From assembly GCA_965649765.1 (NCBI GenBank), contig OZ287753.1, positions 37,882,001 through 37,946,000 on the forward strand: a stretch of 64,000 nt of DNA. The letters run 5' to 3'. Source of the DNA: Bispira polyomma. Its lineage: Eukaryota. The notes below the pieces were generated by a model. The model was not told where the DNA came from. It did no database searches and was given only the letters and a program-made list of their open reading frames with translations. Positions 771 through 61,520 of this stretch are shown here, piece after piece (the stretch's first letter is position 1; every line of letters starts with the position of its first letter). A program made the translations under genes and the position numbers.

Positions 771-1081
771 TCTGTGTGAGGTTCTCAGCGTCCTTGGAGA
801 CAGAAGAAGTAGTAGTCGCATATCCGGACACGCACAAGAGCAGATTCTGATTTTTTCGTTTGCGAAGACAAGACCAGTACGTCAAGATGTCGTCAGGAAT
901 CTCGACCACAGACCCAGATTTTCAGTATCTGGGTGTGGACAGGAAGGCTCTGATTGCCGAGCAGAAGCCTTTCGATGGCAAGAAGAACTGCTGGGTGCCC
1001 GACGATAAAGAGGGCTACATGAGGGGTGAGATCGAGAGCACCAAGGGAGACATCGTCACTGTGAGGAAGGAGAACATGTCG
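761..1081 (+). CDS. Mhc: Mhc exon 1 (5'UTR from ~761, coding 887-1081; [20 protein letters not shown]...KENMS)
   Basis: Acceptor tttcccag at 760, aagATG at 887, donor TCG|gtaagg at 1082. The promoter and any non-coding first exon probably lie upstream of the window. Confidence 0.9.
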
Positions 1082-4000
1082 GTAAGGACGGGGGCTGGAC
1101 ACTAAGTAAAAATCTGAAATCAGGCAGCTTAAGACAGGTTATATACTAGCTAAATCTGAAAACAAGCAAACATTCTTAGAATTTTTTTGTTTAACCCAAT
1201 CAGATCTTTGAAAAAAACATTCTCAGACAATCAAATTGCTTGAGACAAAAAAAATTAATACTAAGAATCTTTAGAATACCATGCCTGGTTAGGACATGTT
1301 AGTATGGTTAGGACATTTTAGGCAATGTGGCTGTGAACGAGAAAAGGGTTCAGTGAGGTAGGCTGATGTATAGAAGATTTTTGAAAGGCTTTCTGATGGA
1401 GAGTAACTAGTGGGATGGTTCTAATGTGTAGAGGTAAATAATTCCAAAAAGAGGGAGGACAGTAGATGAACGACTTTGTAAAGTACTTTTGAGACTTGTA
1501 GAGGCTTCTACCAAACTTAGAAACCTTAAGAAGCTTAAGCTCTCGACAACTGTGTCTGATGTTTCTGGCAGATATGCAAGAGTTGGGGGTATCCTCAATG
1601 TAGTACACTGGTTGACTATATAGTTAAGAGTATTGTATGTAACCAGGCTAGTTTTGAACTTGCATCTACATTTAGTGGGAGTTTGAGATGCCTGACGAGA
1701 TGATGACCAGTCAGGGTTTCTATATATGGGTATATGGTGTTTAGCCTTGCATAAGGCCCCTGGTTGCATTCGAATACTGACTTTGGATTTTACAGTCTGC
1801 TACTTAGATTTTCACACATTTTTGACTGTGTAATAGTAATATCACACAGCTCACACGTCAGTATTTTTGGCTTGGTGAAATTAGTTAAGCTTTTGTGTGT
1901 CAAATATTAATTGCATTTTTTTTAAAGTTTGATAATGATCTTACATACAACAAATTGTGTCTTTTCGATGTTAATCTATTATATTACTAATGTTGATATT
2001 CTTCTGGCACTGACCAATGACCTATGCCTTCTGATAGATGTTTAAGTATTGCCTTAGAATCCTGCTTTAGTGATAACAAAGAGATATTATAATTATGTTT
2101 CCTTAAAGTTTGGACTTTTAAATAATAAAACAGTAATGTATGTCAAGGATAATACGTTTCTGTAGTTTGTCTTATGATACAATATATACATGATCATTTA
2201 TATTTCATAATATATCATATATAAAAATATGTGTATTAGTGATTAAACCATTCTTTATATCATCCATTGCTGTCCCTCTCGCCCCCATTTTTCAAAGACT
2301 GTGGAGCTGCCCAAAGAAAAGATTGAACAGATGAACCCCCCTAAGTTTGACATGGCTGAGGACATGGCTAACATGACCTACCTGAACGAAGCCAGTGTCA
2401 TGGGCAATCTACGTGCTCGCTATGTGAAACTGTTGATTTATGTGAGTAAACAGAGCCGAGAGAGAGATGACATAGAGAGTGGCTAACCAATGTGAAAGGA
2501 ATGCGCCTTCCTTCCAAAAGACCGATCAACCTAGTTTTGGGATGATGCTCTAAACACCACCACCCATTCCCTGTGTTCACCTGTGGACCTTGACTCCAAA
2601 AGTACCTCTCCTGTATATATCGTATATACAGATTTCCTGCCCTACACACCCTTTGTCATCCTATGGATACTCCACCTTAAAAAATCCACATATTAATGTT
2701 TTGCATATTTTCAGCACACCCATATTCTTGTCAGAAACTCAAGCTCAAACTCAGCCCAAGTGAAGGCTATGCGCCAGAGTGTATACTACTGGTCTGATCA
2801 TATATTTTGTGCAGAGCTTCCAGCACTGAATTGAAATATGCAGTCAGATTTGACTAAATTAGAATATTCTGCTGTTTACAAGATGGATTTTCTAAAAGAA
2901 AAGCCACAAAATATGTAGAAATCTTTTTGAATCAAATATGTTAAACAGTAATGTTAACATAATATTTTATATATGTACGTCGATATGAAGAATATTAGAT
3001 TGAAACTTGAGTCTGGTTTGAGTTTGACATTTTGGGAGAATACGCCCCCCAGATATCCAAGCAGTGCCTACCCTATAGCTGCCACATGCACTCCAAAAGT
3101 AGCTCTATCATGTATATATATAAAGGTGTCCCCCTTTCACCATATGAAATCAACACTACTATATGTATTGTACTGTTAACTATTTAATATCTACCCAGTG
3201 GATTTTTTTTTCAACCATAGTATTTTTTTTTTTAAATCTCAAACTTTACATCTTGTAAAACAAATTTCCAAAAAACTACTTTGAACAAACAAAAGTGGTT
3301 AGAAGTAATTTTACTTTTCGCATTTTTTACTTCAAATTCTTTGGCAAATAAATCAACAAAGTGGGTGTTCCCTGAATAGAGAATGGTACTAACCCCACCC
3401 CCTTCCAACCCAACCCTGCTTCTCCAAAACCACAAAGCGGCTGTTTCCAAGTCAGCTGATGAAGAAACCACCACCCACCCCCACCCTTATATTTATTCTC
3501 TATCATATTCTTATATATTTATATATCACAATAACCATGTGTTTTTACATGAATTATCTATTCCTGATTATCTACTCTCTTTTTTTTCAATTCTACTGTG
3601 TTTCTCCAACCTCCCATCACCTGTGTACTACCATCTACCTACCTGCCTTCCCACCTTCCTCACCACCAAAAAAAATCTATAGACTGTTGAACTGAAGAAA
3701 GACCTAATCCAACAAATGAACCCTCCCAAGTTTGATATGATTGAGGATATGGCCAACCTCACCTATTTGAATGAAGCCTCTGTGTTGAGCAACCTGAGGC
3801 AGAGATACGAGAAGATGATCATCTATGTGAGTGTCTTACTAATGTCTACTTTAGGGTAATAAATGTTACAGACCAAATGTTACATGCCAAATTGCTCAGT
3901 TCATTAAATGGGCAAGAAAACAACTTGCCAATTTCGTGAAATGAGCAAACCCAACAGCACAATTTATGAAAGAGGCAACTTTGCCCCCCAAAACACTACT

Positions 4001-7000
4001 CGCTTATTTCATGAGATGTGCACAACCTTTTGTAACATACAGTTTTCCTTCACAGAGAGGAAAAATGTAAGATATTAATTTACTATGTCTTATACAACTG
4101 TAATTTTATTTAAATTTCTTAGGTATGCCTAAGTTACGCGAATATAACCTGACCAAAGTAAAGTTTATATGTAAAAAGGTCATCATGTTATTTGTTGGCT
4201 GGTCTAAAGTCAGAAGTAATAAAGTAATTTCAGTTTTAAACCAAACACCAACAGTAATATTTTAATTTGATTTTAAAAACATATTGTGAACAGTGTGCAC
4301 ACAGTCGTTTTTTTTGTCAGAAGATTATTTTTCTCGTTTATCATGTTGTGTGCCATCGAGCTTCACAAATATAGCTACAAAAGGGGAAAAATGGCATTTT
4401 TTATAAAATAGAAGCAAATATATTACATAGCATTATGAAGAGCTTTTTGGAAAAGAGTTGATCTGATTGTAAAGAAAGAAGATAACCACATATAATAAAT
4501 GCTGTCGTACATTTGATCCATATAGACCTTATATCTTGTCTATAAAATATCCAGTACATCTGTGTGCTTTTGGTTATATTTGTTCTAGGCAATTACTACC
4601 TGTATAGAAATGAGAGAATTTATTACAGTTATCTGTTATCTTTTAATGGAGCTTTATCACTGTTTACCAGAGAGAAGTACATATATCTATGACTCATACA
4701 TATATATACAAGTAATATATATACCAGCGATAGATAAGTGTTCATCAATATAACTATAAAATTGGCATGTCTAACATTTTGCTACAAAAGTGTCTTATAT
4801 ATTGGTTAATTCAGAGCAAATAGCCCACTGAAAGTCTAGACTTAATTACCTTAAAGTTCAGAATGTTCTTTCAAAGAGAAAAATCGGCGACTGCCATGGC
4901 GTAATATGTTAGCTTGATCAATAGTACAACATATCACTACAACCTATAATATGCAGCCTTCTCGGCTCCGCTGGGAAAAAAAACACAGCAGACGGGTTTA
5001 TTTTAGGTTGTAAAGAGCAAATGGGGGAGTAAGACCTATGCCAAATCTTACAGAAGAACCTCGAGGTTTTTTAGTGGTCTGTGAAGTATTTACTTGGCTT
5101 TATGTACACCACTCAAGATAATAGTTTTCTAGTGCTCTGTTGGCCTGGAAAACTATTTGGTGAGATGTTTTTACCTGTGGCTTTATGCCTGAGGTAACGT
5201 GGTGTGCAAGGCCCGTGTCTAGGGAAAGTAACTTTGTACAGTGGTATCCAAAAGTGTTGCCAGGCCAGGTTATAAAACTTACTTGTTACAATTTTATCAT
5301 TCTTAGTCAAATAAATTAAGCCCATTGCAGATAGTGTGCAATGGCCACTGTTCAAAAACAAGAAGCTACTAGCTGTTTTTAGTGTTATAGGTTGACAAAG
5401 ATTTTTACTTAATAAGTGTTGAGTAAGATATACATTAAAACAGAGTACAGCTGGGGTGTTGAACAAGGTTGTTTAATTAGCACAGTAAAATTTTACCAAG
5501 GTCATTTGTTAACATATATAAATAGGTTCTGTGGTAACACGTCAAAGGACATATATGTCTGGAGAGAGTTTATCAGTGTTTTAAGTGACCTTGTATATGC
5601 ATGATACTTTCCTATAACTTTTCTATATTATATCTTCCCCTTCCTACAGACCTACTCTGGCCTGTTCTGTGTGGCTATCAACCCCTACAAACGTCTGCCA
5701 ATCTACACCCGTCAAGTGGTGAGCAAATACAGAGGAAAGAGGAAGAACGAGATGCCTCCTCACTTGTTCTCCATTGCTGACAATGCCTACAGCTACATGT
5801 TGCAGGATAGGGAGAACCAGTCCATGTTGATCACGTGAGTCTGCTCTCAGCCAATCCCAAAGGAGATTACATTAATCAGCAGAAGTAACATAAAGACAAA
5901 TATTTTTGACAAGAAAGAAGTAACTAGTATATGCCAATTTAGTCAATGTTTTTAGAGTATGTACCCCTTTTTTAAATAGAGAAAATTTGTACAAAAAAAA
6001 AAATTAATTCTATGAAAATATCTAAGTCCTTCTTTTGTATTTGGATAGAAAATTAAGTATTAAGAAACAAACAAACTCCACTCAATAAGCTTTTATATTT
6101 ATATACTTGTTTATTCATTCTTAGTATTTATTTTTTTTATATAATTTTATCTATGTGCAAGATAGTGAATTGAATTTAAAAAAAAAAGCTGAAAAAATTT
6201 GTCAACTTATTTTGTGATTTTATCGACTAAATTGTCGCTGTATAATAATTCTTCAGCATGTTGTCAACATTGATTCATTAAATGTCTTTTTGGCATACAA
6301 TAAAAACAGTTAACCAACATTATGATTGACCATTGTATATATCAGTACTTATTTCTATGTGTGTTACCCTTTTGGCACCACCAACCTTCCACTAACCATA
6401 CCTGTGTGTGTTGGGTGTGATCCCCCCACCTCTCAATTAAAACTATGCACAGGGGAGAGAGTGGTGCTGGAAAGACCGAAAACACTAAGAAGGTCATTCA
6501 GTACTTCGCCACCACTGCTGCGACGCTCATGACCCAACCGGGAGGAGAAGGCGCTTATGTAAGTGTCACTGTCCATATGTCAGAAATTTGACAGACTACC
6601 CCCACTGTCAGGTGTACTGGACATTTACGAAAAAAAAAAACATTTACAGAAGAGTGCTATAGTGTGTATGGTGCAAAGGCAGGGTTTTTTAACAAGGTAA
6701 AGAAAGAGGTCATGTAATCACCATTCATTAAATGGCTGGCATTCTATGGGATAAACTCTTCAAGGTCAAATTGAAATCTTCAAGTTTACAGCTATATGTA
6801 TCATCAAAATGAACTCCCATCACACAGCATTTTGAAATTCCTCAATTGACCCTTTCTTGTTGTCATCTCATTTTAAAGCTATGGCAAGCAGACTGTATAG
6901 AAATGTAAGGAATACCTCCAGAGATCTCTAGAGAGCTATTTTACTGCTAAGGTAACCATGGAGGGATTTAGTATCATTGAACCTACAAATTAAAACCCTG

Positions 7001-10000
7001 GGAAGCTGGGTATATCTGATGAAGCATTTTCCTGTCCACAGACCTATATTTCTTCCCCACTTCATTAACACTTAAATCCCTTCATACTGATAACGCCAAT
7101 GTCGGCCTAAATTACCCACATACCCTGCAAAGCCTCAACCAATATACACCTTCCCACCAATATTTGTGTATTTTCCCTTCCCATTACTCGAGCATGCCTC
7201 TGTGTAAGTCCACACAATGTATACATACAAACCATTATCATGTTCTGATATCTGCCCCCACAGTGGTGAGTCTGGTGCTGGTAAGACTGAGAACACAAAG
7301 AAGGTAATTGCTTACTTTGCCATGGTTGCTTCTGCACAAATGAAGGCTGATGCTGCCAAGGAAGAAGAAACTAAGGTAGAATCTAATCTCCCCACCTTGA
7401 TCCCCATACCTTCATATCAACAGTTTGTGTGTGCTGTGGTTTGGATATTCTGTGGACAACTGTCTTTCTCTGTCTCTCTTCCTCAACCAATTCCCAGATA
7501 TTCTAAATAAACATACATTGTCATTGTTCACTCCTCTGTTTTCTTCTGTATGCTGTACCATCCTACTATCTTTTATATATTTCTATGATCAACTGGTTTA
7601 ACCAGTTGAAGTTTTAGTCTTGTTATTTGTGGAGGGGTTTGTAGTTTTAAACCAGAACTTTCTTATATAGCTCAAAATGGATGATAATAACAAATATACA
7701 ATAATCATTGTCATGTAAGCTACTGAAGTGCATGTGTTTGGTGTGGTTTTCTTCTACTTTAAGTGTTAACCTTAATTATGATATGGTAAGGTAAAAAACT
7801 TTTGAAACAGGCCAATCATTTGTGCATGATTGCAATACATTGGAGACCAGGTACATAAAGAAACAGGAAAGGTACAATGACTTGATCAAGAAAATCTTAT
7901 GTCAACTGACTATACTTAGTGATTCTTGGTGAGTTTAAAGATTATAACTGAACAATTCATCTTATAAAGATATAATTTTAGAATTTATCATCACAATATT
8001 TCCAGAAGAACACTGACTATTCTTATATAATCTTTTGGACAAGCATCATATTTGTCTATTACTATTATTGGAGAAATCTCATATTTTATTAGAGTTACTG
8101 TATAGCTCTATATAAGGGAAGCCTATACTTTTTGTGCATGTACTGAAGTGTTTTCACAGTAATGTGAGTGAATTTCGTAAGTCTAAAACAAGCATGTAAG
8201 TTTGGTACCTTCTTTTGGAATAATTCATGGCAATTTTCTGTCATTATAAATATACAATAGTGAAAAACATCTATGTATATTCTGATCAAATATCCTTTAA
8301 AGGACCATTTTTCGGACTGAGAAAATATAGCTTTGAATTAACCTTTTCATTGTGTGGTGATTTCTTTAGATATTTATATAAATGTATAACTAGATTTCTT
8401 TTTATAATAAAAAGTAAAAGCATGAATTTAGCTATTTAATAAAGTTTTAAAAATAATAAATATATTTGTACTTTAAAACTCAACATTTCTTGATGTATAA
8501 TTGCACATAAATATATATATATTTTACCTTAAAAATATAATTTATGAAATCATAACTGATGTGTATATTCAATACTGTGTTGTATTTATTACTCTATATT
8601 ATTAACTTCTATTTTCATGAATATGCTATTCTTCTGTTTCAGTTTACAACATTGTTGCAGTAACTAGTGTTCCTTATGATGAATAAAACAAATTGTGTAT
8701 TATTTCTTGGTGGCTGAGAATGTATGAATGAATCGTTTATGCTTTCTGTTACAAAGTATATCATTATAAACATAAACTTATACAATCTTTACATAGGGCG
8801 AGAAAAAAAAGGGATTGGAAGACCAGATTGTCCTGGCTAACCCTCCCCTTGAGGCCTATGGCAATGCCAAAACAGTCAGAAACAATAACTCCTCCAGATT
8901 TGTAAGTAAAGGACACATCAGTGCTGCACATATCTCCCAGACTCCTTCCAGACATTCCAAAATCCCTACTCTCATTAATGTCACTATACCTTAACACTCT
9001 GTCTTACTTATTCGTGTTCTCTGTCAGTCCTTTTGATGGCCAATGTTACGAAAACAAGGTAAGTCAGTGACTCTATGTCACAACTATTCATCATACTCTA
9101 TCCACCACTCCTTTTTGTTTGCCTTTCTCCGAGTGATTTTGCATCCCTAGACTCTAAATATCAGTCAACTCAACATTCCACCTGAATCCCCATGTACAGT
9201 CTCTTAGCACATATATGTATATATTCTACAGTTTAGAATATATAGATGTGTCACACCTACCTTAAGTAAAAAACCTCTTTTTAAACCTCAATACCCCACA
9301 CAAGAAACCTATAGATGACCTACCGTGCACCAACCAATTTTAGTTTCAGGACCCAATCAACTGATGCTGCTGATATATGCATATCTCTACCCTCGCTTGC
9401 AATCACATGCTACCAATAATTAGTAATAGTTTACTGTATGTTGACAACCTATTCCAGGATCCTTCGGCAAAAAGGAAAAGATCCTTTAAAGACCAGAGTG
9501 TCCGGGATAACTCATCACTTTCAACAATATCAGAAACCCTGTTATTCTGTCTGTGTGATGAAACAAAAGAAACCTACCAAACCTTACCTTACAGACCTTT
9601 CCCACCTCATCTACTTCACAAACCTTATCTATTCTATGTACCCCATTCCATTTATTTTTATACTATATAACCACCGAATTGTATGTAATCAATCTTGAGT
9701 GTGTCTCCTTTCCCATTGTACCAGAATTTCTTTATAACCCTTATTTTACCAAAATATGTGTATTATCTCAGCCTTAATAAGGACATGCTTCCATGATTTC
9801 CTCTGTGTGAACCCCTTGTGCTCCACAACTTTCTATGTTAAATACAACTATGTGAAGCAGTCTCACCCTTTTAGAATAGCCAAAATGCATTTCAAAGCAA
9901 AAAAGACATTTCTTTCTTATTATGCTCTGTTATATGACTTTCAATATGAGCCATCAAATATGTGACAGTAAGCAAACGTCAATAATGAAATTTAAAAACT

Positions 10001-46000: not shown

Positions 46001-49000
46001 GCACAACAACACAGAGCATAAATAGCTCAGAAAATAGCAATAATTTCCTGTTTTGATTTTTCTAAATAAAATATTGATGCATGGTCTTTTATTTCTTATT
46101 GTTAGTTGCATGCTAATAACCGTAGCTGTACCTGTAGAAGTTAATATCAATAGAACAGTTCCATCATTTTTCTATTACTATGACTAACATATAAAAAGAA
46201 TAAATAGTGATGTTAACATGATAATGGCTTAAGGCTTTTCAAAAGCTTTTAACCCATTTTTGTCTGGTAAAATTGTAATGTAGGCTTTCTATTAACTAAT
46301 AGTAGGTATATTAACTGTTGGAAAAATTACACCACAACCCAGATGTAACACAGGTGTAACTCTAAAAGCATGTCAACAACTTTTCAGCATGTGTGTGTGT
46401 GTCCCCATGTTTATAGTGTGTGTTTTACAGAAGTGACAAAGAAAGGCATGAACTTGAAAAGGAATGTGAAGAACTGCTTATTAGTTTAGAACAGTCAGAA
46501 AGAATAAGGGTAGGTTCCTGTCACAGAAGTAAAAAGCTAAATATTTAGTTTACGCGACTAAATTGAATGCAGTAGAACCTCTATTATTGTCTGAAGTTGT
46601 TGGGAGAGCAATATTGTTTGGGAAATCAAAGGTGCCTAAAATAGAATAGGCATTTTGGTATAAAACTACCAGAAAACATATATTTATGAGAATGGAAATT
46701 AGTTTATTAAGTCAAATCTTCAGATACTAGAAGTTCTAGTGCATTATATGGTGAAATATTCTAAATGTTGAAAAAACAAGCTGTACAATCGTCATGTTAA
46801 AATACAGAACTATCTTTTAAACTTCAGCAATAAATATAAAATATTCTTTTATTGCTAGCTGAAAACTAATTCTGTCCTTTGACACACAATACGTGTACAT
46901 CTCCTTTAAATGAAGTCACTGTACTATTAAGAGTTGTTGCTAGCTGTATATTAATGCCATCCTACCAGACACAATACGTGTATGTCTTTTTCAAACAAAG
47001 TCACTGTACTACTATTTAAACAGAGCCAGGCTGACAAGATGGGCAAACAGTTGGAATCTCAACTCGGAGATCTCAATTCCAAACTGGATGATGCCAGCCG
47101 CAACATCCAGGACATGACATCCCAGAAGAACCGCCTGGAGCAGGAGAACTCCGAACTGGGCCGCCAGTTGGAGGAGGCTGAGAGTCAGCTAAGCCAGCTG
47201 AACAAGCAGAAACAGGCTCTCCAGAAGGCCCTGGAAGAGGCCAAGGCACTGGCTGAAGATGAAGGCCGTATGCGTGCCAAGCTCCAGGGTGAAAACCGCA
47301 ACATGAATGCCGACCTAGACCAACTCCGCGAACAGATCGAGGAGGAAGCCGAGGGCCGTGCTGACCTACAGAGGCTCCTGACCAAGGCCAATGGAGAGAT
47401 CCAGACCTGGCGCCGCAAGTTTGAGAGCGGTGAGGGTGGTGTACGCTCCGAGGAGATGGACGACCTCAAGAGGAAGATGAACCAGAAACTGGCAGATGCT
47501 GAAGCTCAACTGGAAGCTGCTCAGAGCAAGGCCAGCTCTCTGGAGAAGGCAAAGAACAGGTATAACAAAGTGGTTGTGGAAGACAAATTATATATGGGGG
47601 AGAGTGGTTTTATCATTGTAGCATTAAGTGTTTTTGGCAAGCAGGGAAGATATTTATACTTGTTATCAATGTTAAACTTTTGATACAATCATGCACTTGC
47701 TACTTCTGTGTAAGCAAACAGTTTTATGGGAGGATGTTATTTCACTGGATTTAGTGATTTCATAGTAAATTTTAAATTTAAACCCATTGTGATGTTACAG
47801 TATAATCTCCATATATTTTACGTTCACAGAAACCAGCTAAAATGTTTGATAATCACAACAATTTTACTGATGGCCAAATAAATTTATTCATTACAGAGAG
47901 GCGTTTACCATTCAGAAGTGCCCACCAACTGAGATATTGCTATATTGCTACAATAAACTCTCTTCTGTATTATTTCAGATTGTTACAGTATAATCTCCAT
48001 ATATTTAACGTTCACAGAAACCAGCTGAAATGTTCGATAATCACTGTACAATTTTACTGATGGCCAAATAAATTTATTCATTACAGAGAGGCGTTCACCA
48101 TTCAGAAGTGCCCACCAACTGAGATATTGCTATATTGCTACAATAAACTCTCTTCTGTATTATTTCAGACTCCAGGGTGAACTGGAAGATCTTATGATTG
48201 AGGTTGAAAGGTCCACAGCTATCGCCAATCAAGCTGAGAAGAGGCAACGTAGCTTTGACAAGACCGTTGATGAATGGAAGCGCAAGGTTGCTGACCTGCA
48301 GGCTGAACTGGAAAGAAGCAATGCTGAAGGTCGCGGCAATGCTGCTGAAGTGTACAAACTGAGATCTCAACTGGATGAGACCAGTGACACCATTGACGCT
48401 CTTCGCAGAGAGAACAAGAATTTGGCTGGTATGTAAAGTGATTGTTGTACTTACAGTAGAACCTTTATTATCTGAGCTTCTATTATTTGAATATTTGATT
48501 GTATGAACACCTTTTCTACTTTAATTCCTCTTGCCAGATTCATGACATGAAACCCTATAGTATATAATACAGAGAAACCACAATTATTCAAATACCCCTG
48601 ATTTTAGATAAGCTCAATAGGCCATAAAAAAATTCTTAGACATGATGATCTAACAACTTTCCAGTCTATTAATAATGGACAGGTCTTTTATATCAAAGGA
48701 ACACGTGTCTTTCATCAACTAAAAAATATTTAATAAGTAATATTTCTACTTAAAAAACATTTAAGGCTATACTAGCATTTTTATGTACAAAACTACTTAA
48801 GTGTGATGCTATAAAATATCTAGACCTTGATTTTACATAAGCTCACTGGGCCATGTCAAAGTACTTATCATCTCCTATACAGTGTATTTTCAAGAGCTTC
48901 TGTTTTAGTTCACATGTTTTTTTACCTTCTTACAGATGAAATCCATGACCTAACTGACCAACTTGGTGAGGGAGGCCGTAGCGTACATGAACTCGAGAAA

Positions 49001-52000
49001 TCTCGTAAACGTCTGGAAATGGAGAAGGAAGAGCTGCAGTCCGCTCTGGAGGAGGCTGAGGCAGCCCTGGAACAGGAGGAGTCCAAGGTACAGCGTACAC
49101 AGCTTGAGATGAGCGCCATCAGACAAGACATCGACCGCCGCATGGCTGAGAAAGAGGAGGAATTCGACAGCAGCCGGTTAGTTTAACACTTCAACGCACA
49201 TGGGCTAAATGAACACAGGATGCAGCTGCAGATCAAAAAGTCCATCTCAATCATAGTTTCTCATACGCTGCACCCAAGTTATATGATGGCCTACCACATG
49301 ATATTAGATGTTCACCTTTCGCTTTCAACTTTTAGAGTTCAAGCTCTCAACCTATCTCTATCAAAAAGCTTATCCACGACTCCTTCCCTGGTAACGATTT
49401 TTTTTGCGCCTTAGAATTAGCTAGTACGGAGATTAAGCGCCATTACGGAATTGATTAGATCAGATTAGATATTGAAAGTAGTATCTCCTAATTATCACAC
49501 TATTTTTTACAGGATAAGAATTTTCAAGAGAGAATATCTAAGCAAATCTAAGTACAATATTTAAAATTTACAAATGTAAAGTAACAGCTAATTAATAAAA
49601 AATTATTTGGACAGCAGAATTATTATCTGAAGATGTTGGGAAAGCCTGTTTGTTTGTTTTTTTGGATAATAGAAGGTTCGTAAAACAGAAGAGGTATTTT
49701 AGTATAAAACATTAAGAGAATTGAAATGTGTGAAGGTAAAAGTGTGCTAAACTTCATAAAATTCAATATTCAGATGACAAAAGTTTGTATAATATTCTAC
49801 TATATTACATTTACAGCAAGAACCACCAACGTGCTCTTGACTCAATGCAAGCCAGTCTGGAAGCTGAGGCCCGTGGCAAGGCTGAAGCCATGCGCATGAA
49901 GAAGAAACTAGAATCTGATATTAATGAACTCGAGGTGGCCTTAGATGGTGCTAACCGCGGACGTGCTGAGGCTGAGAAGAACATCAAGAAATATCAACAA
50001 CAAATCCGTGAATTACAGATGTCTATTGAGGATGAACAGCGCAGCAGAGATGAAGCTCGTGAGGCCTACGCATCTTCTGAACGCCGTTCCAATGTCCTGG
50101 CTGGTGAAATTGAGGAACTGAGGACACAGCTCGAATCTGCTGAGCGTGCCCGCAAGGCTGCTGAGAGTGAGCTCCATGAAGCCAGCGATCGTGTCTCTGA
50201 GCTTTCTACACAGGCAGCCACACTCAATGCTGCCAAGAGGAAGCTGGAAACTGATGTACAGGCCATGCAGGTACAATTTGTATGACTAGATCATTGTTAC
50301 TGCTGTAAAATGTGTCAATTGCAGGATGCAAATCTAGTACTATAAAATGAGACAAAATGATGACCAGATTAAATTTCTTAAGATACTTATTATGAATACA
50401 TATAAGTTTTTATGCAAATATATATCGTAATTGCAGCTAATTAAAATGTTTATTGTTACAGAAGTTAATTGATATTGTTGTTCTGCTTTAGAAGATGCTT
50501 TGCATCTCTAAAGCACATTAAAAATCCACCATACAATACAACAAATTTATAATAATTATATATGAAAAGAACATATCTTTATTATACCAAAGGTATACAA
50601 TTATTTCTTGTGACACATATACTAAGTATTTTATCGTTGTGACAGACTCCACATTTTCTTTTCATTTCAGACCGATCTTGAAGACCAATCTGCCGAACTT
50701 AAAAACTCTGAAGATAATTCCAAGAAGGCCATGGCTGATGCTGCCAAGCTGGCTGAAGAGCTCCGCCAGGAACAGGACCATGCCGGACACATTGAGAAGA
50801 TGCGTCGCACTTTGGAGAGCCAGGTGAAGGAACTCCAGGGCCGTCTGGATGAATCCGAGGCGAATGCCATGAGAGGTGGCAAACGCATAATGCAGAAGCT
50901 CGAACAGCGCGTGCGTGAGTTGGAAGTTGAGGTCGACAATGAACAGCGCCGCAACAATGAGTCACAGAAGGGCATGCGCAAGCAGGAACGTCGTTTAAAG
51001 GAGTTGGCCTACCAGTCCGACGAGGACCGCAAGAGCCAGGAGAAACTGCAAGAGATGATCGAGAAGCTGCAGCAGAAGATCAAGACCTACAAGCGCCAAG
51101 TAGAGGAGGCTGTAAGTGTTTTAAATTTGTAGAGTTCCAAAAACTAGGAATCTAAAATTCACCACTGTATATCTAATGTCGCCACCTAGAAAATTTGTTA
51201 TATGTTTGCTGAAATTAAGATTTTTGTGACTATTTGGCCTTACTTACCTAGAATCAAGTTTTTATTTGTTTTTATTGATTTGGCTTCATTTGTAATACAG
51301 TCATAGTTAAAATTATTACTTTCTCTTATACTCGGATTTTTATTCATTAAAATTTACGAGTTGTCAATGTTTTTTTGGGTTTGCTATTAAGGAAAACCAG
51401 CGATTTAGTTTCAACACAAACTAATTACTTGGTACATTCTGGTCAATGTTGACTAAAAGTACACATGTAGTTGTGTACGAAATGATACAGTGCTATCCTT
51501 CAGTAGTTTATATTATAGGGATTGATACCTGCTGCAGAGTAATCTTATATACTGTAGAACCTCTATTTTAAAAAATTCTGTTACTTATATATTCAATGAT
51601 AAAGTGATTTTTCACCATCCCAATTTAATTATAATTTTTCCCCAAATGTCTTATAATTGAGATTTCTATACAGTTTTATAACATTTAAAATTAAAATATG
51701 CCATGAGATCTTGGCATCTTAGCATGTGTCAACACTGCTTTTACCCTTTTATCTCAAAATTACAGGAGGAAATTGCTGCTGTCAACCTGGCCAAATACCG
51801 CAAGGTACAGCATGATGTGGAAGAAGCTGAAGAACGTGCTGACATGGCAGAAAATACCTTGGCTAAGCTCAGGGCTAAGAACAGGAGTTCTGTGTCTTCT
51901 TCTAGGACAACCAGCTCCGTAAGTGACCATTAAAGTGTAGCATTAAGTATGATTCGAAACTTCATTCAAAGCCAAATATTTATGGCTTGTTTATAGTTTG

Positions 52001-55000
52001 CAGGGCAACCAGCTCTGTAAGTGACCTATTCTTGAATCATGATTCAAAACTTCATTTAAGACCTGATGTTTATGTCCTGTTATAGTTTCCAGGACAACTA
52101 TCTACCATAAGTGACTCTTAAAACTTCTGGCATACAGTATAGGTTTAAGGTACACATTTGTGCTATACCTATGAAAATAGAGTACTATTATTGAGGGCTC
52201 TCTATTCAAAGACAAACTCTGGTGTTATAGTATAGGATTAGAGGATACACATTAGTGTTATATCTTGAGTGGGGTTCTTTATATGTGTATCATATAAGTT
52301 ATAACCCACTTATTTTATGACATGATTTGCAACTTGGGAAGTTAAAAGTTTAATAGATTAACGGATATGAAGTACAAGTATTTATCCGATAAATGTAGAT
52401 TAATTTAAACTATCACATTTTTGCTTAATATATCTGTCTGTAATATAATAAAATACTTTCTAAACTATATTCTTTAGACAAAGTAATTTTGTTTAGATAA
52501 CACTCATAAGGATGCTAAAAGAGTTCAATAATGGAATAATACATGTGTATTTTACTTTGAAATCACAATTTCTAGATTGGAGGTCGAGGTGGAAATGTCA
52601 GTATAACATCTTCCACTCTCCGCACTAGGAGATCCACTTCTGATACCACTGAATAAGCTGCAATAGTTAATCAATTTCAAAAACAAACTTCTTTTAAGGT
52701 AAATTTGTCAAAGAAGCTGCTGTTGACAAAAAACAAGCATGATGCATGACAGTTCTGTAGTATAATGAAGTTATCAAACACGAGTTGTTCATTTGTATAA
52801 TAATCGTTAACAGTTTTGGCCTGAGAAATGAGCAGCTGAAATTGGTATATCAAAATTTTGTATACCAATTCTATTTATTTTGTCTTTTGTTTAATAGTAT
52901 TTCAGAAGGTGTTGAGCTGATGTTTTGTGCTGTTGTTTATATTTGTTGCTTTCTAGATATTATTTCTTAGTTTCAAGATAACAAACCATTATGTTTGTAT
53001 ATATTGTTGTTTTTGTTTTTCTTAATTTTCTTTTTGTTTCACATTTTCGGCTTGTAGGGAGGGACAAAGATTACTATCACTGAATCCAGAATGTCATCAT
53101 CTTAGATTCTTTCACCTGTAAGCGTCAAACATTCAGTCTTATAAGCTTGCAACCTCTCTTGCCTATGTCTATTTGATGGGAAATATTTATTTTAAATAAA
53201 GAGAGCCCCCCACCTTGTACCACCCCAGTATTTTTACTAATCAAAACCATTTTACCAATATTTGTAAACTCTAAAAATATCCTACAACCCTCTACTTACT
53301 GTAACTGTGTAGAAATACACAATACCAATGACCCCCCTTCTCAGAATACCAAGCACCGCACCTTCACTGCTAAAACATTGTCTTAACCTTATCCACCACT
53401 CTACTATAGGAGTAAATATAAATGATACTCTGTTACAGGAATAAATACAAAAATAAAATACTCTGTTATAGGAGTAAATACAAAACACATTTACTGCTAA
53501 AACCTTGTGTTAGTTAACCTTATCGCTCACTCTGCTATGAGAGTAAATACAAATAATACTCTGCTACAGGAGTAAATGTAAAAAATACCAAACACCTTTA
53601 CTGCTAAAACCTTGTGTTAACCTTAAACCTTGTGTCAACTTTATCACCCACTTTGATACATATAAGAGTAAATACAAAATACCTTTACTGATCAAAGCTT
53701 GGGTTAACCTCATTTCCCACTCTGATATATATCGGAGTAAATATGCAAACAAATAAATACTCACTAGAGAAAACCTTATATATTTCTTCTTGAAATACTC
53801 AGCTTTTTAAACAATATTTAAACAACAGTCATATTCAAGATTGACAGCATAGAAATCATTTGAAGCTTGACTTGTGAAGTCTTATTGTTTCTACTCTTGT
53901 AATTATGTTGACAGTAATTTGATAGTAGCATTCGCTTAGAATGAAATTAAAATATGCAAAAGATTCATTTTAGGACATTTTAGTTGATCCTTGAACACCA
54001 TGCATATATTTTATACCTATTGTTGTCTTGTCCAGTACCAATCTGTTTCTTGCCAACTATACCATGTCTGTTTACTTGATGCAGTGTTGTTTTCCTGTGT
54101 GCTGAATTCTTTCTTACAATACACTATAGTAGAACCTCTATTATCCAAACATTCCATTTTGTGAACTCCTTTCCACCATCCAAAATTCTATGTTTTTCTG
54201 GTGTTTTATACAGAAATACCTCTTCTATTTTATTAATCTTCCATTATCATGAACAAAATCTTGCTCTCCCAACATGTTTGGATCACAGATGTTGTACTGT
54301 ATATGTATTAGGTACCTAATACTGATTTATAGTGTCAGTTATTTACACAGCTATTTACAGCTTTTTATTCAACATACTTCATACAGAAATAGGAATTTGG
54401 AAGTATGTACTTTGTCTATTTAACAGAAGGCTACTACCTATTGTCCATTTAAATGATAGGTACTATCTACAGTGACTATTTAACAGATAGGTAGTATCTA
54501 TCAATAAAATAAAGAGAAGAAATTTATTCCTTCATTGAAATAATAATATTGTATTTAAGTGATTCTGAGACAAAAAACCGCCAATCACCATTGAATATGA
54601 TTACAAATTAGAATAATATATATTAGTCATATTACGAATGAATAAGCAAGCATTTTTATAAATTAAAGAAACTAAAATCAATTAAAGCTAATAATCATGA
54701 CATGAGTTTTATATACAAAACAGATCAGAAGATGATATGTGATTGAAGAATAATAATTTTTAATGAAGATAAAAAAAACATTAACTGACTAATAATAGAA
54801 TGTGTTTTTGTTTTCTTTTCTTGTTATCTTCAAACAGACCTATGACAACAACTACGGCTACAGATCTGCAAATAGTGGACTCAACAACTACATCTTAAAT
54901 AGATCGACGACATCATTAGCAGAACACTCATACTCTAGTCCCAAATCAGGGTCTGCTACTCGGGGAGGAGGGGCAACAGGAAGTGTGAAGTCCTGGGAGG

Positions 55001-55017
55001 AAGAAGAAGAGCGTTAA
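887..55017 (+). CDS. Mhc: Muscle myosin II heavy chain gene (multi-exon, extensive mutually exclusive splicing); span from start codon to last stop codon
   Basis: Exons in colinear order encode the N-terminal [19 protein letters not shown]-loop [13 protein letters not shown], switch I NNNSSRFGK, switch II LDIAGFE, relay [24 protein letters not shown]1/SH2 [18 protein letters not shown], converter, IQ region, [14 protein letters not shown] and a full coiled-coil rod. All junctions are GT-AG with compatible phases; one path sums to 5808 nt before the tail exon. Confidence 0.98.
1300..1770 (-). mobile_element. Degenerate 3' end of an L2/CR1-like LINE
   Basis: Minus-strand translations [14 protein letters not shown] and [18 protein letters not shown] resemble the FK...YK and WNxLP motifs of L2/CR1 ORF2 C-termini. 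Confidence 0.6.
2298..2441 (+). CDS. Mhc: Mhc exon 2a (alternative; [48 protein letters not shown])
   Basis: 144 nt, phase 0/0, aag|act...tat|gtgagt. Confidence 0.93.
2719..3045. mobile_element. MITE-like dispersed repeat (related copies ~32050-32175, ~33283-33480, ~45135-45350)
   Basis: Shared blocks tgaaggctatgcg and aaatatgcagtcagatttga; imperfect terminal inverted repeats (aaactcaagctcaaac / gtttgagtttga). Confidence 0.6.
3683..3826 (+). CDS. Mhc: Mhc exon 2b (alternative; [48 protein letters not shown])
   Basis: 144 nt, same phase as 2a, tag|act...tat|gtgagt; not in ORF track. Confidence 0.93.
5650..5834 (+). CDS. Mhc: Mhc exon 3 ([19 protein letters not shown]...[10 protein letters not shown])
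   Basis: 185 nt, cag|acc...ac|gtgagt. Confidence 0.96.
6453..6558 (+). CDS. Mhc: Mhc exon 4a (alternative P-loop/loop 1; [35 protein letters not shown])
   Basis: 106 nt, phase 2/0, donor tat|gtaagt. Confidence 0.92.
7264..7375 (+). CDS. Mhc: Mhc exon 4b (alternative P-loop/loop 1; [37 protein letters not shown])
   Basis: 112 nt, phase 2/0, donor aag|gtagaa. Confidence 0.9.
8797..8901 (+). CDS. Mhc: Mhc exon 5a (alternative loop 1/switch I; [35 protein letters not shown])
   Basis: 105 nt, phase 0/0, tag|ggc...ttt|gtaagt. Confidence 0.92.
9458..9545 (+). pseudogene. Decayed copy of exon 5 (pseudo-exon; [21 protein letters not shown]...)
   Basis: Acceptor-like attccag at 9457; 9489-9511 matches exon 5a 8819-8841 at 20/23 nt; the 3' part (EAYGNAK, NSSRF, donor) is missing or frameshifted. 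Confidence 0.6.
10396..10497 (+). CDS. Mhc: Mhc exon 5b (alternative; [34 protein letters not shown])
   Basis: 102 nt, cag|ggt...ttc|gtgagt; a second in-frame AG at 10404 could shorten it by 3 codons. Confidence 0.92.
11636..11731 (+). CDS. Mhc: Mhc exon 5c (alternative; [32 protein letters not shown])
   Basis: 96 nt, tttag|gtt...ttt|gtaagt. Confidence 0.93.
12114..12177 (+). CDS. Mhc: Mhc exon 6 ([21 protein letters not shown])
   Basis: 64 nt, cag|gga...t|gtaagt. Confidence 0.96.
12860..14420 (+). repeat. Degenerate ~600-bp tandem duplication, strongly pyrimidine-skewed, in intron 6
   Basis: caatctatcttag...ccttagctacctctcctgaa at ~12925 and ~13523; tttgctacttcctacttccacttt at ~13277 and ~13951. 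Confidence 0.8.
15320..15418 (+). CDS. Mhc: Mhc exon 7a (alternative; [33 protein letters not shown])
   Basis: 99 nt, phase 1/1, donor g|gtaaga. Confidence 0.93.
15881..15982 (+). CDS. Mhc: Mhc exon 7b (alternative; [34 protein letters not shown])
   Basis: 102 nt, phase 1/1, donor g|gtaaga. Confidence 0.92.
16718..16821 (+). CDS. Mhc: Mhc exon 8a (alternative; [34 protein letters not shown])
   Basis: 104 nt, phase 1/0, donor gac|gtatgt; not in ORF track. Confidence 0.93.
17599..17702 (+). CDS. Mhc: Mhc exon 8b (alternative; [34 protein letters not shown])
   Basis: 104 nt, phase 1/0, donor gat|gtatgt. Confidence 0.93.
18736..18839 (+). CDS. Mhc: Mhc exon 8c (alternative; [34 protein letters not shown])
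   Basis: 104 nt, phase 1/0, donor gat|gtatgt; not in ORF track. Confidence 0.92.
19251..19389 (+). CDS. Mhc: Mhc exon 9 ([13 protein letters not shown]...EQAEADGTS)
   Basis: 139 nt, GT-AG. Confidence 0.96.
19903..20021 (+). CDS. Mhc: Mhc exon 10 ([11 protein letters not shown]...[15 protein letters not shown])
   Basis: 119 nt, GT-AG; contains the cardiomyopathy-loop equivalent. Confidence 0.96.
20649..20798 (+). CDS. Mhc: Mhc exon 11 ([17 protein letters not shown]...[12 protein letters not shown]; switch II)
   Basis: 150 nt, GT-AG. Confidence 0.96.
21360..21530 (+). CDS. Mhc: Mhc exon 12 (relay; [20 protein letters not shown]...IELIEK)
   Basis: 171 nt, GT-AG, single copy. Confidence 0.96.
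21973..22152 (+). CDS. Mhc: Mhc exon 13 ([19 protein letters not shown]...[10 protein letters not shown])
   Basis: 180 nt, GT-AG. Confidence 0.96.
22542..22668 (+). CDS. Mhc: Mhc exon 14a (alternative; [42 protein letters not shown])
   Basis: 127 nt, phase 0/1, tag|gta...g|gtgaga; not in ORF track. Confidence 0.92.
23283..23490 (+). repeat. 42-bp minisatellite, ~4.5 copies
   Basis: tatgcgccat at 23285, 23327, 23369, 23411, degenerate at 23453. Confidence 0.92.
23570..23693 (+). CDS. Mhc: Mhc exon 14b (alternative; [41 protein letters not shown])
   Basis: 124 nt, phase 0/1, aag|gtc...g|gtataa. Confidence 0.9.
24254..24321 (+). CDS. Mhc: Mhc exon 15 (loop 2; [22 protein letters not shown])
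   Basis: 68 nt, cag|ag...agg|gtaagc. Confidence 0.95.
24800..24992. other. Assembly gap (193 N)
   Basis: Run of n. Confidence 1.
25262..25349 (+). CDS. Mhc: Mhc exon 16a (alternative; [29 protein letters not shown])
   Basis: 88 nt, phase 0/1. Confidence 0.9.
26298..26385 (+). CDS. Mhc: Mhc exon 16b (alternative; [29 protein letters not shown])
   Basis: 88 nt, phase 0/1; not in ORF track. Confidence 0.93.
27716..27803 (+). CDS. Mhc: Mhc exon 16c (alternative; [29 protein letters not shown])
   Basis: 88 nt, phase 0/1; not in ORF track. Confidence 0.93.
28671..28758 (+). CDS. Mhc: Mhc exon 16d (alternative; [29 protein letters not shown])
   Basis: 88 nt, phase 0/1; not in ORF track. Confidence 0.92.
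29825..30020 (+). mobile_element. tRNA-derived SINE-like fragment (related pieces ~43005-43130, ~44660-44900, and minus strand ~19515-19570, ~32545-32650)
   Basis: A-box-like tagtggtaac and B-box-like gggtt(t/c)(g/a)aa; shared tail (cattgtgatatgaca...ttaaacccaaa) on opposite strands at ~44846-44893 and ~19518-19562. Confidence 0.55.
30098..30215 (+). CDS. Mhc: Mhc exon 17 (SH2-SH1; [39 protein letters not shown])
   Basis: 118 nt, GT-AG. Confidence 0.96.
30965..31214 (+). CDS. Mhc: Mhc exon 18 (converter and first IQ)
   Basis: 250 nt; [17 protein letters not shown]...[13 protein letters not shown]...FQAHIRG. Confidence 0.96.
31566..31772 (+). CDS. Mhc: Mhc exon 19 (second IQ, head-rod junction)
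   Basis: 207 nt; [27 protein letters not shown]. Confidence 0.96.
32324..32475 (+). CDS. Mhc: Mhc exon 20 (S2; [15 protein letters not shown]...KELEER)
   Basis: 152 nt, phase 0/2. Confidence 0.95.
32954..33068 (+). CDS. Mhc: Mhc exon 21a (alternative S2; [38 protein letters not shown])
   Basis: 115 nt, phase 2/0. Confidence 0.9.
34351..34465 (+). CDS. Mhc: Mhc exon 21b (alternative S2; [38 protein letters not shown])
   Basis: 115 nt, phase 2/0. Confidence 0.92.
35095..35209 (+). CDS. Mhc: Mhc exon 21c (alternative S2; [38 protein letters not shown])
   Basis: 115 nt, phase 2/0. Confidence 0.92.
36036..36245 (+). CDS. Mhc: Mhc exon 22
   Basis: 210 nt; [19 protein letters not shown]...KLEGNIDE. 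Confidence 0.96.
36754..36899 (+). CDS. Mhc: Mhc exon 23
   Basis: 146 nt; [23 protein letters not shown]... Confidence 0.96.
37711..37720 (+). promoter_or_regulatory. MEF2-consensus site CTAAAAATAG (candidate internal muscle promoter/enhancer)
   Basis: Exact YTA(W)4TAR match with a CACCTG E-box about 40 nt downstream; can arise by chance in AT-rich DNA. Confidence 0.35.
38406..38753 (+). CDS. Candidate alternative first exon: 85-codon unique N-terminus reading in frame into exon 24 (headless rod isoform 1)
   Basis: ATG 38406 with in-frame TAA at 38370; open through the exon-24 acceptor into [17 protein letters not shown]. Confidence 0.5.
38663..38753 (+). CDS. Mhc: Mhc exon 24 ([30 protein letters not shown])
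   Basis: 91 nt, phase 2/0, donor atg|gtaagt. Confidence 0.95.
38796..39334. repeat. 255-bp-period tandem duplication followed by an inverted copy (foldback)
   Basis: Units start at 38796 and 39051; 39276-39334 is the reverse complement of ~38974-39036. Confidence 0.88.
41080..41535 (+). CDS. Catchin/myorod-like alternative first coding exon (152-aa non-helical N-terminus; headless rod isoform 2)
   Basis: aagATGG start with in-frame TAA 12 nt upstream; 456 nt open; phase-0 donor GAT|gtaggc compatible with exon 25 (ARIEELEEE). Size and position fit molluscan catchin. Confidence 0.8.
41769..41825 (+). CDS. Mhc: Mhc exon 25 ([19 protein letters not shown])
   Basis: 57 nt, phase 0/0. Confidence 0.96.
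43332..43418 (+). CDS. Mhc: Mhc exon 26 ([29 protein letters not shown])
   Basis: 87 nt. Confidence 0.96.
43694..43860 (+). CDS. Mhc: Mhc exon 27 ([19 protein letters not shown]...LAKIKSK)
   Basis: 167 nt, phase 0/2. Confidence 0.95.
44991..45069 (+). CDS. Mhc: Mhc exon 28a (alternative S2/LMM hinge; [26 protein letters not shown])
   Basis: 79 nt, phase 2/0. Confidence 0.94.
46431..46509 (+). CDS. Mhc: Mhc exon 28b (alternative hinge; [26 protein letters not shown])
   Basis: 79 nt, phase 2/0, ttttacag|a...agg|gtaggt; not in ORF track. Confidence 0.85.
46570..46742. mobile_element. Tc1/mariner(pogo/Tigger)-type MITE-like element (related ends at ~48454, ~49612-49730, ~51552, ~54127-54300)
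   Basis: Recurrent terminus (c/t)agtagaacct(c/t)tatt and its imperfect complement (gatactagaagttctagtg). Confidence 0.55.
47024..47559 (+). CDS. Mhc: Mhc exon 29 (LMM)
   Basis: 536 nt, phase 0/2. Confidence 0.95.
47793..48168 (+). repeat. ~190-bp tandem duplication that includes the exon-30 branch/acceptor region
   Basis: Near-identical units each ending tcttctgtattatttcag (47978 and 48168). Confidence 0.95.
48169..48428 (+). CDS. Mhc: Mhc exon 30 (LMM)
   Basis: 260 nt; [14 protein letters not shown]...RRENKNLA. Confidence 0.95.
48936..49176 (+). CDS. Mhc: Mhc exon 31 (LMM)
   Basis: 241 nt; [21 protein letters not shown]. Confidence 0.96.
49817..50270 (+). CDS. Mhc: Mhc exon 32 (LMM)
   Basis: 454 nt; [21 protein letters not shown]...VQAMQ. 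Confidence 0.96.
50671..51111 (+). CDS. Mhc: Mhc exon 33 (LMM)
   Basis: 441 nt; ...[12 protein letters not shown]. Confidence 0.96.
51766..51918 (+). CDS. Mhc: Mhc exon 34 (end of coiled coil; [13 protein letters not shown]...[14 protein letters not shown])
   Basis: 153 nt, phase 0 donor tcc|gtaagt. Confidence 0.95.
51904..52120 (+). repeat. ~90-98-bp tandem repeats (x2.3) of the exon-34 3' end and donor
   Basis: aggacaaccagctccgtaagtgacc / agggcaaccagctctgtaagtgacc / aggacaactatctaccataagtgac. Confidence 0.85.
52576..52656 (+). CDS. Mhc: Alternative tailpiece exon A ([26 protein letters not shown])
   Basis: tttctag acceptor, phase 0, Ser/Thr-rich tail; candidate donor aag|gtaaat at 52699. 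Confidence 0.75.
   Translation: MGGRGGNVSITSSTLRTRRSTSDTTE
53058..53105 (+). CDS. Mhc: Alternative tailpiece exon B ([15 protein letters not shown])
   Basis: Long polypyrimidine tract, tgtag acceptor, phase 0; candidate donor cct|gtaagc at 53118. Confidence 0.75.
   Translation, partial: GGTKITITESRMSSS
53365..53765 (+). repeat. Degenerate short tandem repeats
   Basis: Recurrent gagtaaatacaaa, actctg and ctgctaaaaccttgtgtta. Confidence 0.75.
54838..55017 (+). CDS. Mhc: Terminal tailpiece exon C ([14 protein letters not shown]...[12 protein letters not shown]) followed by 3'UTR
   Basis: Strong polypyrimidine tract plus cag, phase 0, 59 codons ending in an acidic run. Confidence 0.85.
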   Translation, partial: TYDNNYGYRSANSGLNNYILNRSTTSLAEHSYSSPKSGSATRGGGATGSVKSWEEEEER

Positions 55018-60879: not shown

Positions 60880-61520
60880 GTTTTCGAACTGCTAATTTTA
60901 AGGGTAAATGTTTTAAAATCTTGTGATCTAAAGTTTGGTTTTAAAAGTAATCATTTTATTATTTAATGTACAGTTCTTCCGGAAGAGATCATTAAGTATT
61001 ATAACAACAATTTTTCATGCTGCTAGATGCTAGCAAAGCATTTGACTGTGTACATTATTTTAAGTTATTTTCCTTTGTTGTTTCAGAAAGGATTTTGTCC
61101 TTATCTATGTCATCCTTTTGATAATATATATATATCTATATTTGTACTTGTGTAATACTGTTAGGGTTAAATGGGGGTAATTATGTTTCTGACTCATTCA
61201 TTGTTTCTTATGGTGTAAAACAATGAGATTTGCTTTCACCAACATTATTTACTATGTACATAGATGATTTACTTATTAATGCAAAGGATACTGGCTTTGG
61301 TTGTCACATTGGTACAAAATTTATGGCAGCATGTAGGTATGCTAATGATATAATTTTTATTGCTCCATCAGTTTCTCTTAAACGTATGTTTAAATTATGT
61401 GATGTATTTGAAGTGAAGTAACATGTTACATTTAATCCTGATATGTATCCGTTCCTTCACTATTAAATAAATAACAAAAATGTAGTTAATGGTATTAAAC
61501 ATAATAATGTATTTATTTAA
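60880..61520 (+). mobile_element. Degenerate non-LTR reverse transcriptase fragment
   Basis: LDASKAFD, GVKQ*DLLSPTLFTMYIDDLL, YANDI (YADD-like) with stops and frameshifts. Confidence 0.75.

Follow-up and report, generated by a model that had tools for sequence, protein, structure and literature searches.

A myosin heavy chain gene of Bispira polyomma with nine clusters of probably mutually exclusive exons, three tails and a predicted catchin-type internal start

The locus described here raises the question of whether a single muscle myosin gene is built to be read with a choice of exons at nine positions, and, if so, how much of this arrangement is inherited. The window analysed is a stretch of 64,000 nucleotides of Bispira polyomma (GenBank assembly GCA_965649765.1, contig OZ287753.1, positions 37,882,001 to 37,946,000, forward strand), to which the coordinates below refer unless another locus is named. 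It appears that the locus is a single striated-type annelid myosin heavy chain (Mhc) gene with nine tandem-duplicated clusters of mutually exclusive exons (MXE), alternative last exons, and an internal start for a headless rod of the catchin/myorod type, a reading to which a probability of about 0.85 is given.

Structure and identity of the gene

The whole gene was read and its exons were fixed by coordinate, which placed 34 of them, counted by position, on the + strand between the ATG at 887 and the last stop at 55017 (Table 1). All exons have AG acceptors and GT donors and no in-frame stop. This holds for 23 of 23 variants, which a sequence-only reading had claimed in nine clusters and which were all located at the counts given there: two each for exons 2, 4, 7, 14, and 28, three each for exons 5, 8, and 21, and four for exon 16. 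The exon 8 cluster presumably lies at the position of Drosophila exon 7. Neighbouring choices can be joined in any pairing with no phase clash and no junction stop, and the coding length through exon 34 is 1932-1939 codons, tail excluded. The product of ~1940 aa has an SH3-like domain, a motor (P-loop, switch 1, switch 2, relay, converter), and a coiled-coil rod, in that order. When the arithmetic was recomputed, the earlier figures of 576 motor and 10,368 full-length combinations were right (3456 in total before the tails are counted), and the three tails claimed with them are real. In each cluster the variants are adjacent exons with the same frame and splice pattern, similar length, and similar sequence, the features by which Kollmar and Hatje recognise MXE clusters. 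No further exon copies were found within the window by sensitive self-tblastn with all exons and with exons 15a and 28b of relatives.

Table 1. Features of the Bispira Mhc gene in window positions
Feature	Position	Strand	Remark
Exon 1	887-1081	+	constitutive; ATG, SH3-like N-terminus
Exon 2a	2298-2441	+	arthropod cluster-1 position, SH3-to-motor transition
Exon 2b	3683-3826	+	second variant of exon 2
Exon 3	5650-5834	+	constitutive
Exon 4a	6453-6558	+	published cluster-2, P-loop to loop 1
Exon 4b	7264-7375	+	second variant of exon 4
Exon 5a	8797-8901	+	published cluster-3, end of loop 1 to switch 1
Exon 5b	10396-10497	+	variant of exon 5
Exon 5c	11636-11731	+	variant of exon 5
Exon 6	12114-12177	+	constitutive
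Exon 7a	15320-15418	+	taken as annelid-specific cluster-4, upper 50 kDa; orthologue of Ridgeia 7a
Exon 7b	15881-15982	+	orthologue of Ridgeia 7b
Exon 8a	16718-16821	+	published cluster-5
Exon 8b	17599-17702	+	variant of exon 8
Exon 8c	18736-18839	+	variant of exon 8
Exon 9	19251-19389	+	constitutive
Exon 10	19903-20021	+	constitutive
Exon 11	20649-20798	+	constitutive, switch 2
Exon 12	21360-21530	+	constitutive, relay
Exon 13	21973-22152	+	constitutive
Intron-13 element	22186-22212	+	complementary to exon 14b 23572-23619, -36.4 kcal/mol
Exon 14a	22542-22668	+	cluster outside published clusters 0-11
Exon 14b	23570-23693	+	second variant of exon 14
Exon 15	24254-24321	+	loop-2 lysines; published cluster-8 position, single in Bispira
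Assembly gap (N)	24800-24992		inside intron 15
Exon 16a	25262-25349	+	published cluster-9
Exon 16b	26298-26385	+	variant of exon 16
Exon 16c	27716-27803	+	variant of exon 16
Exon 16d	28671-28758	+	variant of exon 16
Exon 17	30098-30215	+	constitutive
Exon 18	30965-31214	+	constitutive, converter
Exon 19	31566-31772	+	constitutive
Exon 20	32324-32475	+	constitutive
Exon 21a	32954-33068	+	S2 three-way cluster; net charge -4
Exon 21b	34351-34465	+	net charge -6
Exon 21c	35095-35209	+	net charge -9
Exon 22	36036-36245	+	constitutive
Exon 23	36754-36899	+	constitutive
Candidate internal start 1	38406-38558	+	ATG, 51 exon-like codons, GTAAGT donor phase 0
Exon 24	38663-38753	+	constitutive
Internal start 2	41080-41535	+	catchin/myorod-type first exon, 152 codons, phase-0 donor to exon 25
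Exon 25	41769-41825	+	constitutive
Exon 26	43332-43418	+	constitutive
Exon 27	43694-43860	+	constitutive
Exon 28a	44991-45069	+	published cluster-11, rod hinge type A
Exon 28b	46431-46509	+	hinge type B; orthologue of Lineus and L011 28b
Exon 29	47024-47559	+	constitutive
Exon 30	48169-48428	+	constitutive
Exon 31	48936-49176	+	constitutive
Exon 32	49817-50270	+	constitutive
Exon 33	50671-51111	+	constitutive
Exon 34	51766-51918	+	constitutive; read-through gives VSDH-stop
Tail exon T1	52576-52656	+	26 aa + stop
Tail exon T2	53058-53105	+	15 aa + stop
Tail exon T3	54838-55017	+	59 aa + stop

Several local peculiarities accompany this structure. Intron 18 (31214/31566) begins three codons earlier than in the relatives checked, before DQR, through which their exon continues; this is apparently an intron slide of 8-9 nt. 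The gene may have a fourth end by read-through of exon 34. At 51900-52120, the exon-34 end and donor region is repeated in three tandem, diverged copies, and in the second copy AG and GTAAGT flank a 13-nt piece, possibly a micro-exon or a decayed duplicate. A direct duplication of ~190 nt at 47790-48170 includes the exon-30 acceptor region and leaves a decoy acceptor near 47980. The 3.1-kb intron between exons 6 and 7a contains a long CT-rich, G-poor, internally repeated tract (12700-14500), and short, very high-copy genomic repeats with read depth thousands of times background occur in introns 20 and 21a (32555-32660 and 33320-33410). Downstream of the gene, short open frames at 61227-61418 and 57600-58600 resemble, by eye only, reverse-transcriptase fragments of decayed LINE elements.

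Searches were made exon by exon, with the joined spliced protein left out. The constitutive exons are 78-79% identical to a protein cluster that includes the Mhc of Ridgeia piscesae and Lamellibrachia satsuma and to some further transcripts, and at most 70% identical to the proteins of molluscs and Lineus. Two single-exon trees, containing annelid muscle Mhc rows and no non-muscle row, place the window gene within the annelid clade (support 99/93 and 95/98). One striated-type Mhc locus was found in searches of the 1.04-Gb genome of the species. A second striated Mhc was rejected, since the genome gave only non-muscle myosin II, a distant rod gene (C1), and unconventional myosins. The rod gene, at C1:79.11 Mb, is 33-39% identical to rod exons 29 and 33 with no motor match nearby and is probably paramyosin. 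The gene at C6:7.87 Mb belongs to the smooth/non-muscle class of myosin II, with type-specific motifs and 40-80% per exon to the window gene; a gene of this type is the smooth-muscle marker of Platynereis (PMC5167519). The earlier idea that one locus could supply all muscle types is therefore too wide, and by analogy with Platynereis the gene probably serves somatic and fast muscles.

Age and origin of the exon variants

In a pooled comparison of variants, pS is 0.83, that is, synonymous sites are saturated, whereas pN is 0.21; pN/pS lies between 0.07 and 0.53 in every variant pair. Therefore, the variants are old duplicates kept under protein-level selection, a saturated pS speaking for past selection, not for present use. 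Their nucleotide identity is 44-84%, and their flanks are about as similar as random introns. Variants match one another with E values of 1e-9 to 1e-22 in all clusters but the divergent hinge pair 28a/b, for both members of which relatives have separate orthologues.

Five of the nine clusters recur in the Mhc loci of Ridgeia and Lamellibrachia (two variants each for exons 4, 5, 7, and 8, three for exon 16). Exons 2, 14, and 28 are single there, unlike in Bispira, and a cluster at exon 21 is impossible since exons 19-22 are fused. The Ridgeia gene also has three tails in the order of T1-T3, with weak matches. The nemertean Lineus longissimus has two variants each of exons 4, 5, 15, and 28 and seven of exon 16 (cluster-9; 25030-29940 of its locus), the most among the loci compared. 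Locus L011 has three variants of exon 8, two of 15, four of 16, and two of 28, and the annelid-like locus L015 (GCA_013332715.1) has two of exon 8, four of 16, two of 17, and two hinge exons, both of type A. The exon-17 pair of L015 (8117-8230 and 9600-9713, SH1/SH2 helix region) lies outside the published clusters as far as these are described in the available text. Loci L010 and L013 are compact, with neither alternative exons nor a catchin exon, and these lineages probably use several genes instead. For exons 4, 7, and 28, variant a and variant b each have their own counterpart in relatives (Ridgeia, Lineus, L011). The clusters at exons 4, 5, 7, 8, 16, and 28 match published lophotrochozoan ones and are best read as inherited lophotrochozoan or annelid clusters. 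Transcripts of relatives vary at some of these positions: in one close relative, a pair of transcripts carries different forms of exon 16 and alternates between T1-like and T2-like ends, Lineus RefSeq isoforms exchange exon 15, exon 16, and the tail, and T2 matches the transcript tails of P0220 and P0234. For exon 16 and the tails, these transcripts indirectly support the use of one variant at a time.

The remaining three clusters have no counterpart in a sampling of relatives that is thin and leaves out the Capitella, Platynereis, Owenia, and Argopecten loci. Exon 2 is single in five of five loci that cover it and exon 14 in nine of nine; exon 21 is a separate exon in none of ten. None of these ten has the phase-2 intron at 20|21, and the 21|22 intron is found, among relatives, in Mytilus only. 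The simplest reading would be three lineage-specific duplications, exon 21 having become duplicable because the intron at 20|21 isolated it. For these three clusters it is sequence constraint only that speaks for their use.

It could be argued that the copies are an assembly artefact, namely uncollapsed haplotypes or mis-joins by the gap in intron 15, which begins 479 nt past the exon-15 donor and ends 270 nt ahead of the 16a acceptor. The exons on its two sides are on the same strand, in order, and in phase 0/0, and exons 15 and 16 are directly adjacent in Ridgeia, Lamellibrachia, Lineus, Mytilus, and the ENA loci; therefore, the coding residues are complete across the gap and the gene is continuous in its frame logic. 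An additional exon may lie within the gap. The gap is probably not hiding a missing exon-15 type, since in relatives with two exon-15 variants the type absent from Bispira sits upstream of the type present, a place that is fully read in the window. An artefact is at odds with the divergence of the variants, with their unrelated flanks, and with the occurrence of the same clusters in other species. For exon 21 it is refuted: long contigs from three DNA runs equal 31400-36950 (including exons 19-23) with zero differences, even depth over the exons, and no variation in them. The runs belong to one study, possibly the assembly's own source, and so exclude mis-assembly only. A search for sequencing runs with this sequence gave three, all DNA-like and none of RNA. 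Taken together, an artefact is almost certainly the wrong explanation. A subtler alternative is that only the inherited clusters are used and that the lineage-specific copies (one of 2a/2b, 14b, and 21a or 21c) are silent leftovers of duplication. This would agree with the low acceptor scores of 2a, 14b, and 21b (0.6-2.5, against a constitutive mean of 7.5) and with the lack of exon 2, 14, and 21 copies in any relative. However, pS is 0.72-1.01 with pN of 0.20-0.33, frames are intact, lengths are near-identical, the heptad core is conserved, and codon use is exon-like (+0.16 to +0.92, against -0.37 for the best intronic ORF). Since a dead exon would have lost its frame and splice sites by the time of synonymous saturation, silent leftovers are unlikely, and old copies kept by selection remain the preferred reading.

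Splicing, internal starts, and possible functions

From the arrangement of the exons, we infer that one variant per cluster enters each transcript. In the clusters at exons 4, 8, 14, 16, 21, and 28, inclusion of any two variants at once throws the reading out of frame, and a stop follows within 27-53 codons; at exons 2, 5, and 7, with lengths that are multiples of three, double inclusion keeps the frame and meets no stop. Steric exclusion is out, since the introns between variants, at 460-1500 nt, are too long for it. Variant acceptors are weaker than constitutive ones (p 0.026), and variant flanks are C-richer in five taxa. In relatives, ACCC is in excess downstream of variants beyond composition (pooled p 0.0016), a correlation only. 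Rbfox, QKI, MBNL, and PTB motifs showed no enrichment within the window, the enrichment of TGTGT and GTGTT was not replicated in relatives, and that of GTGTG was replicated just marginally. A shared docking site with selector pairing as in Dscam was not found by inverted-repeat, duplex, and shuffle tests in the window. The intron-13 element complements variant-specific codons of exon 14b; this pairing (p 0.007, one of 46 tests, not significant after 46) is a lead only, and it could silence 14b or loop out 14a. In the mechanism proposed, muscle splicing factors would pick one weak-acceptor exon per cluster, most likely through the weak acceptors and the C-rich, ACCC-bearing flanks rather than a Dscam-style docking site. 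Frameshifted double inclusions would be removed by nonsense-mediated decay, and the clusters at exons 2, 5, and 7 would need active exclusion because their frame is kept on doubling.

That same frame neutrality invites the reading that exons 2, 5, and 7 are cassettes which may be skipped or doubled, all the more as introns of this length give no steric block and the window tests found no docking system. Their sequences, though, belong to the motor core (switch 1, upper 50 kDa), so that doubling or loss should break the fold, and the closest full-length transcripts of relatives, at about 1955 aa, are normal in length and contain each exon once; cassettes are thus quite unlikely. Independent, near-random choice as in Dscam, yielding thousands of isoforms, would be allowed by every combination being in frame, but Drosophila uses few of its 480 combinations (PMC2257972), in scallop the choices at clusters 2, 3, and 11 go together according to muscle type (PMC3912159, in the text available), and the window tests gave no shared selector. 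Such free combination is highly improbable. By analogy with the coupling in Drosophila and scallop, the choices are probably linked, leaving tens of isoforms rather than thousands, which sides with the earlier expectation of a repertoire far smaller than the arithmetic. Mutually exclusive and probably coupled choice is retained as the preferred reading.

Two internal starts had been claimed, one of which is strongly supported as a catchin/myorod exon by its sequence and place. The exon at 41080-41535 joins exon 25 in phase 0, followed by 825 rod residues through exon 34. Published catchin/myorod has a unique first exon of ~156 aa joined to the final ~830 Mhc rod residues (PMC12040844, in the text available). 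The Bispira exon has this layout, with 152 codons against 156 in Mytilus and the same intron before the same rod exon, similar to the molluscan form (Yamada 2000, via the accessible parts of PMC12040844 and PMC4410989). BLAST matches it to Mytilus at E 2e-5 and to annelid-like loci at 1e-13 to 1e-17. Seven further loci have a homologue at this place that shares a C-terminal motif, namely six that are annelid or annelid-like (Ridgeia, Lamellibrachia, L011, L012, L014, L015) and, more weakly, the nemertean Lineus, where a catchin-like ORF starts at 35526 of the locus. Unlike these likenesses in layout, overall identity to Mytilus is 21%, and the Mytilus MLCK phosphosite Thr141 is not kept, being Ala in Bispira and Gly in other annelids. 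The Drosophila myosin rod protein (MRP) also differs, starting ~260 residues earlier than catchin through a 5' exon extension (PMC3912159, as its text describes). Catchin has been described as specific to molluscan catch muscle (PMC12040844, PMC4410989), and the literature searched gave no report of annelid catchin or of a headless catchin form outside molluscs. Catchin/myorod may even, though this is less likely than not, be an ancient lophotrochozoan headless-myosin product, expressed in annelid and nemertean muscle, and not a molluscan invention. With a conserved exon of this kind in animals without known bivalve-type catch, it can now be asked whether catchin brings about catch or serves thick filaments in general. 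The other start, at 38406, was compared with an MRP-type extension of a rod exon and is uncertain: it is an unconserved ORF of 86 codons in frame into exon 24, of which the first 51 look coding and end at a GTAAGT in phase 0 that fits exon 25, the rest looking intronic, and it has no counterpart in six relatives compared. A role as a second catchin-like exon was rejected, the eye-catching likeness being left unscored by a catchin-motif HMM.

Exon 14 corresponds to scallop residues ~587-627, the run-up to loop 2 that ends where loop 2 starts. Exon 21 corresponds to human MYH7 ~926-963 in the S2 coiled coil, the distal part of Ring 2 and beyond. Ring 2 (E921-E935) binds loop 2 of the free head in the folded-back off state (PMC13127576), and human cardiomyopathy mutations, E927K, E930K, and E935K, cluster in this region (PMC5803174). 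The three exon-21 variants keep the heptad core and differ in net charge (-4, -6, and -9); 21a has an alanine-rich middle, and within the Ring-2 part, the first ten residues, the spread is small (-4, -4, and -5). The motor clusters would adapt ADP release and actin binding to each type of muscle. The exon-21 trio would shift S2 charge in a portion of acidic Ring 2, the docking place for loop 2 of the free head, and its choice may tune the firmness of head parking or S2 stiffness, which is the function we would prefer on these residues. The trio would then provide natural variants of the very head-docking region that cardiomyopathy mutations hit (PMC5803174).

Comparison with known myosin genes

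Mhc clusters 0-11 were defined from 116 animals by Kollmar and Hatje in 2014 (PMC3912159), and the exon-to-cluster mapping was taken from the text descriptions there. To the extent of these descriptions, exons 2, 4, 5, 7, 8, 16, and 28 match clusters 1, 2, 3, 4, 5, 9, and 11, the exon-14 pair and the exon-21 trio lie at none of the twelve positions, and clusters 6, 7, 8, and 10 are single exons in Bispira. A check for an identical published cluster set found none within the same descriptions. According to that text, cluster 1 was gained in arthropods and is published for arthropods only, and all clusters arose early and were afterwards just lost or enlarged (PMC3912159). The early-origin picture would be corrected by three clusters that look like lineage-specific gains, one of them repeating the arthropod cluster-1 position; the exon-17 pair of L015 is an undescribed cluster of another annelid-like locus.

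In Capitella teleta Mhc1, as described in PMC3912159, there are seven clusters and three C-terminal exons, compared with nine clusters and three tails in Bispira. Clusters 6 and 8 are present and 1 and 2 absent, the reverse of the Bispira gene, in which the exon-14 and exon-21 clusters are extra. Daphnia pulex Mhc1, like the Bispira gene, has nine clusters with a pair at the exon-2 position. It reaches 1536 motor and more than 3072 full-length combinations, against 576 motor combinations in Bispira, uses relay and converter clusters where Bispira has single exons, and is without an S2 cluster (PMC2257972). The scale of the Bispira system is therefore within the known range, and calling it unusually expanded, with Drosophila and scallop as the only yardstick, was an overstatement. 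Drosophila Mhc likewise combines one gene, MXE clusters, a hinge pair, and an internal start for a headless rod, with five clusters and 480 combinations against nine clusters in Bispira. The design of many myosins from one gene has precedents in other worms, in molluscs, and in water fleas; what appears to be new, as far as the literature was searched, is the exon-14 set in the motor, the exon-21 set in the rod, the repeat of cluster 1 outside arthropods, and the annelid catchin exon.
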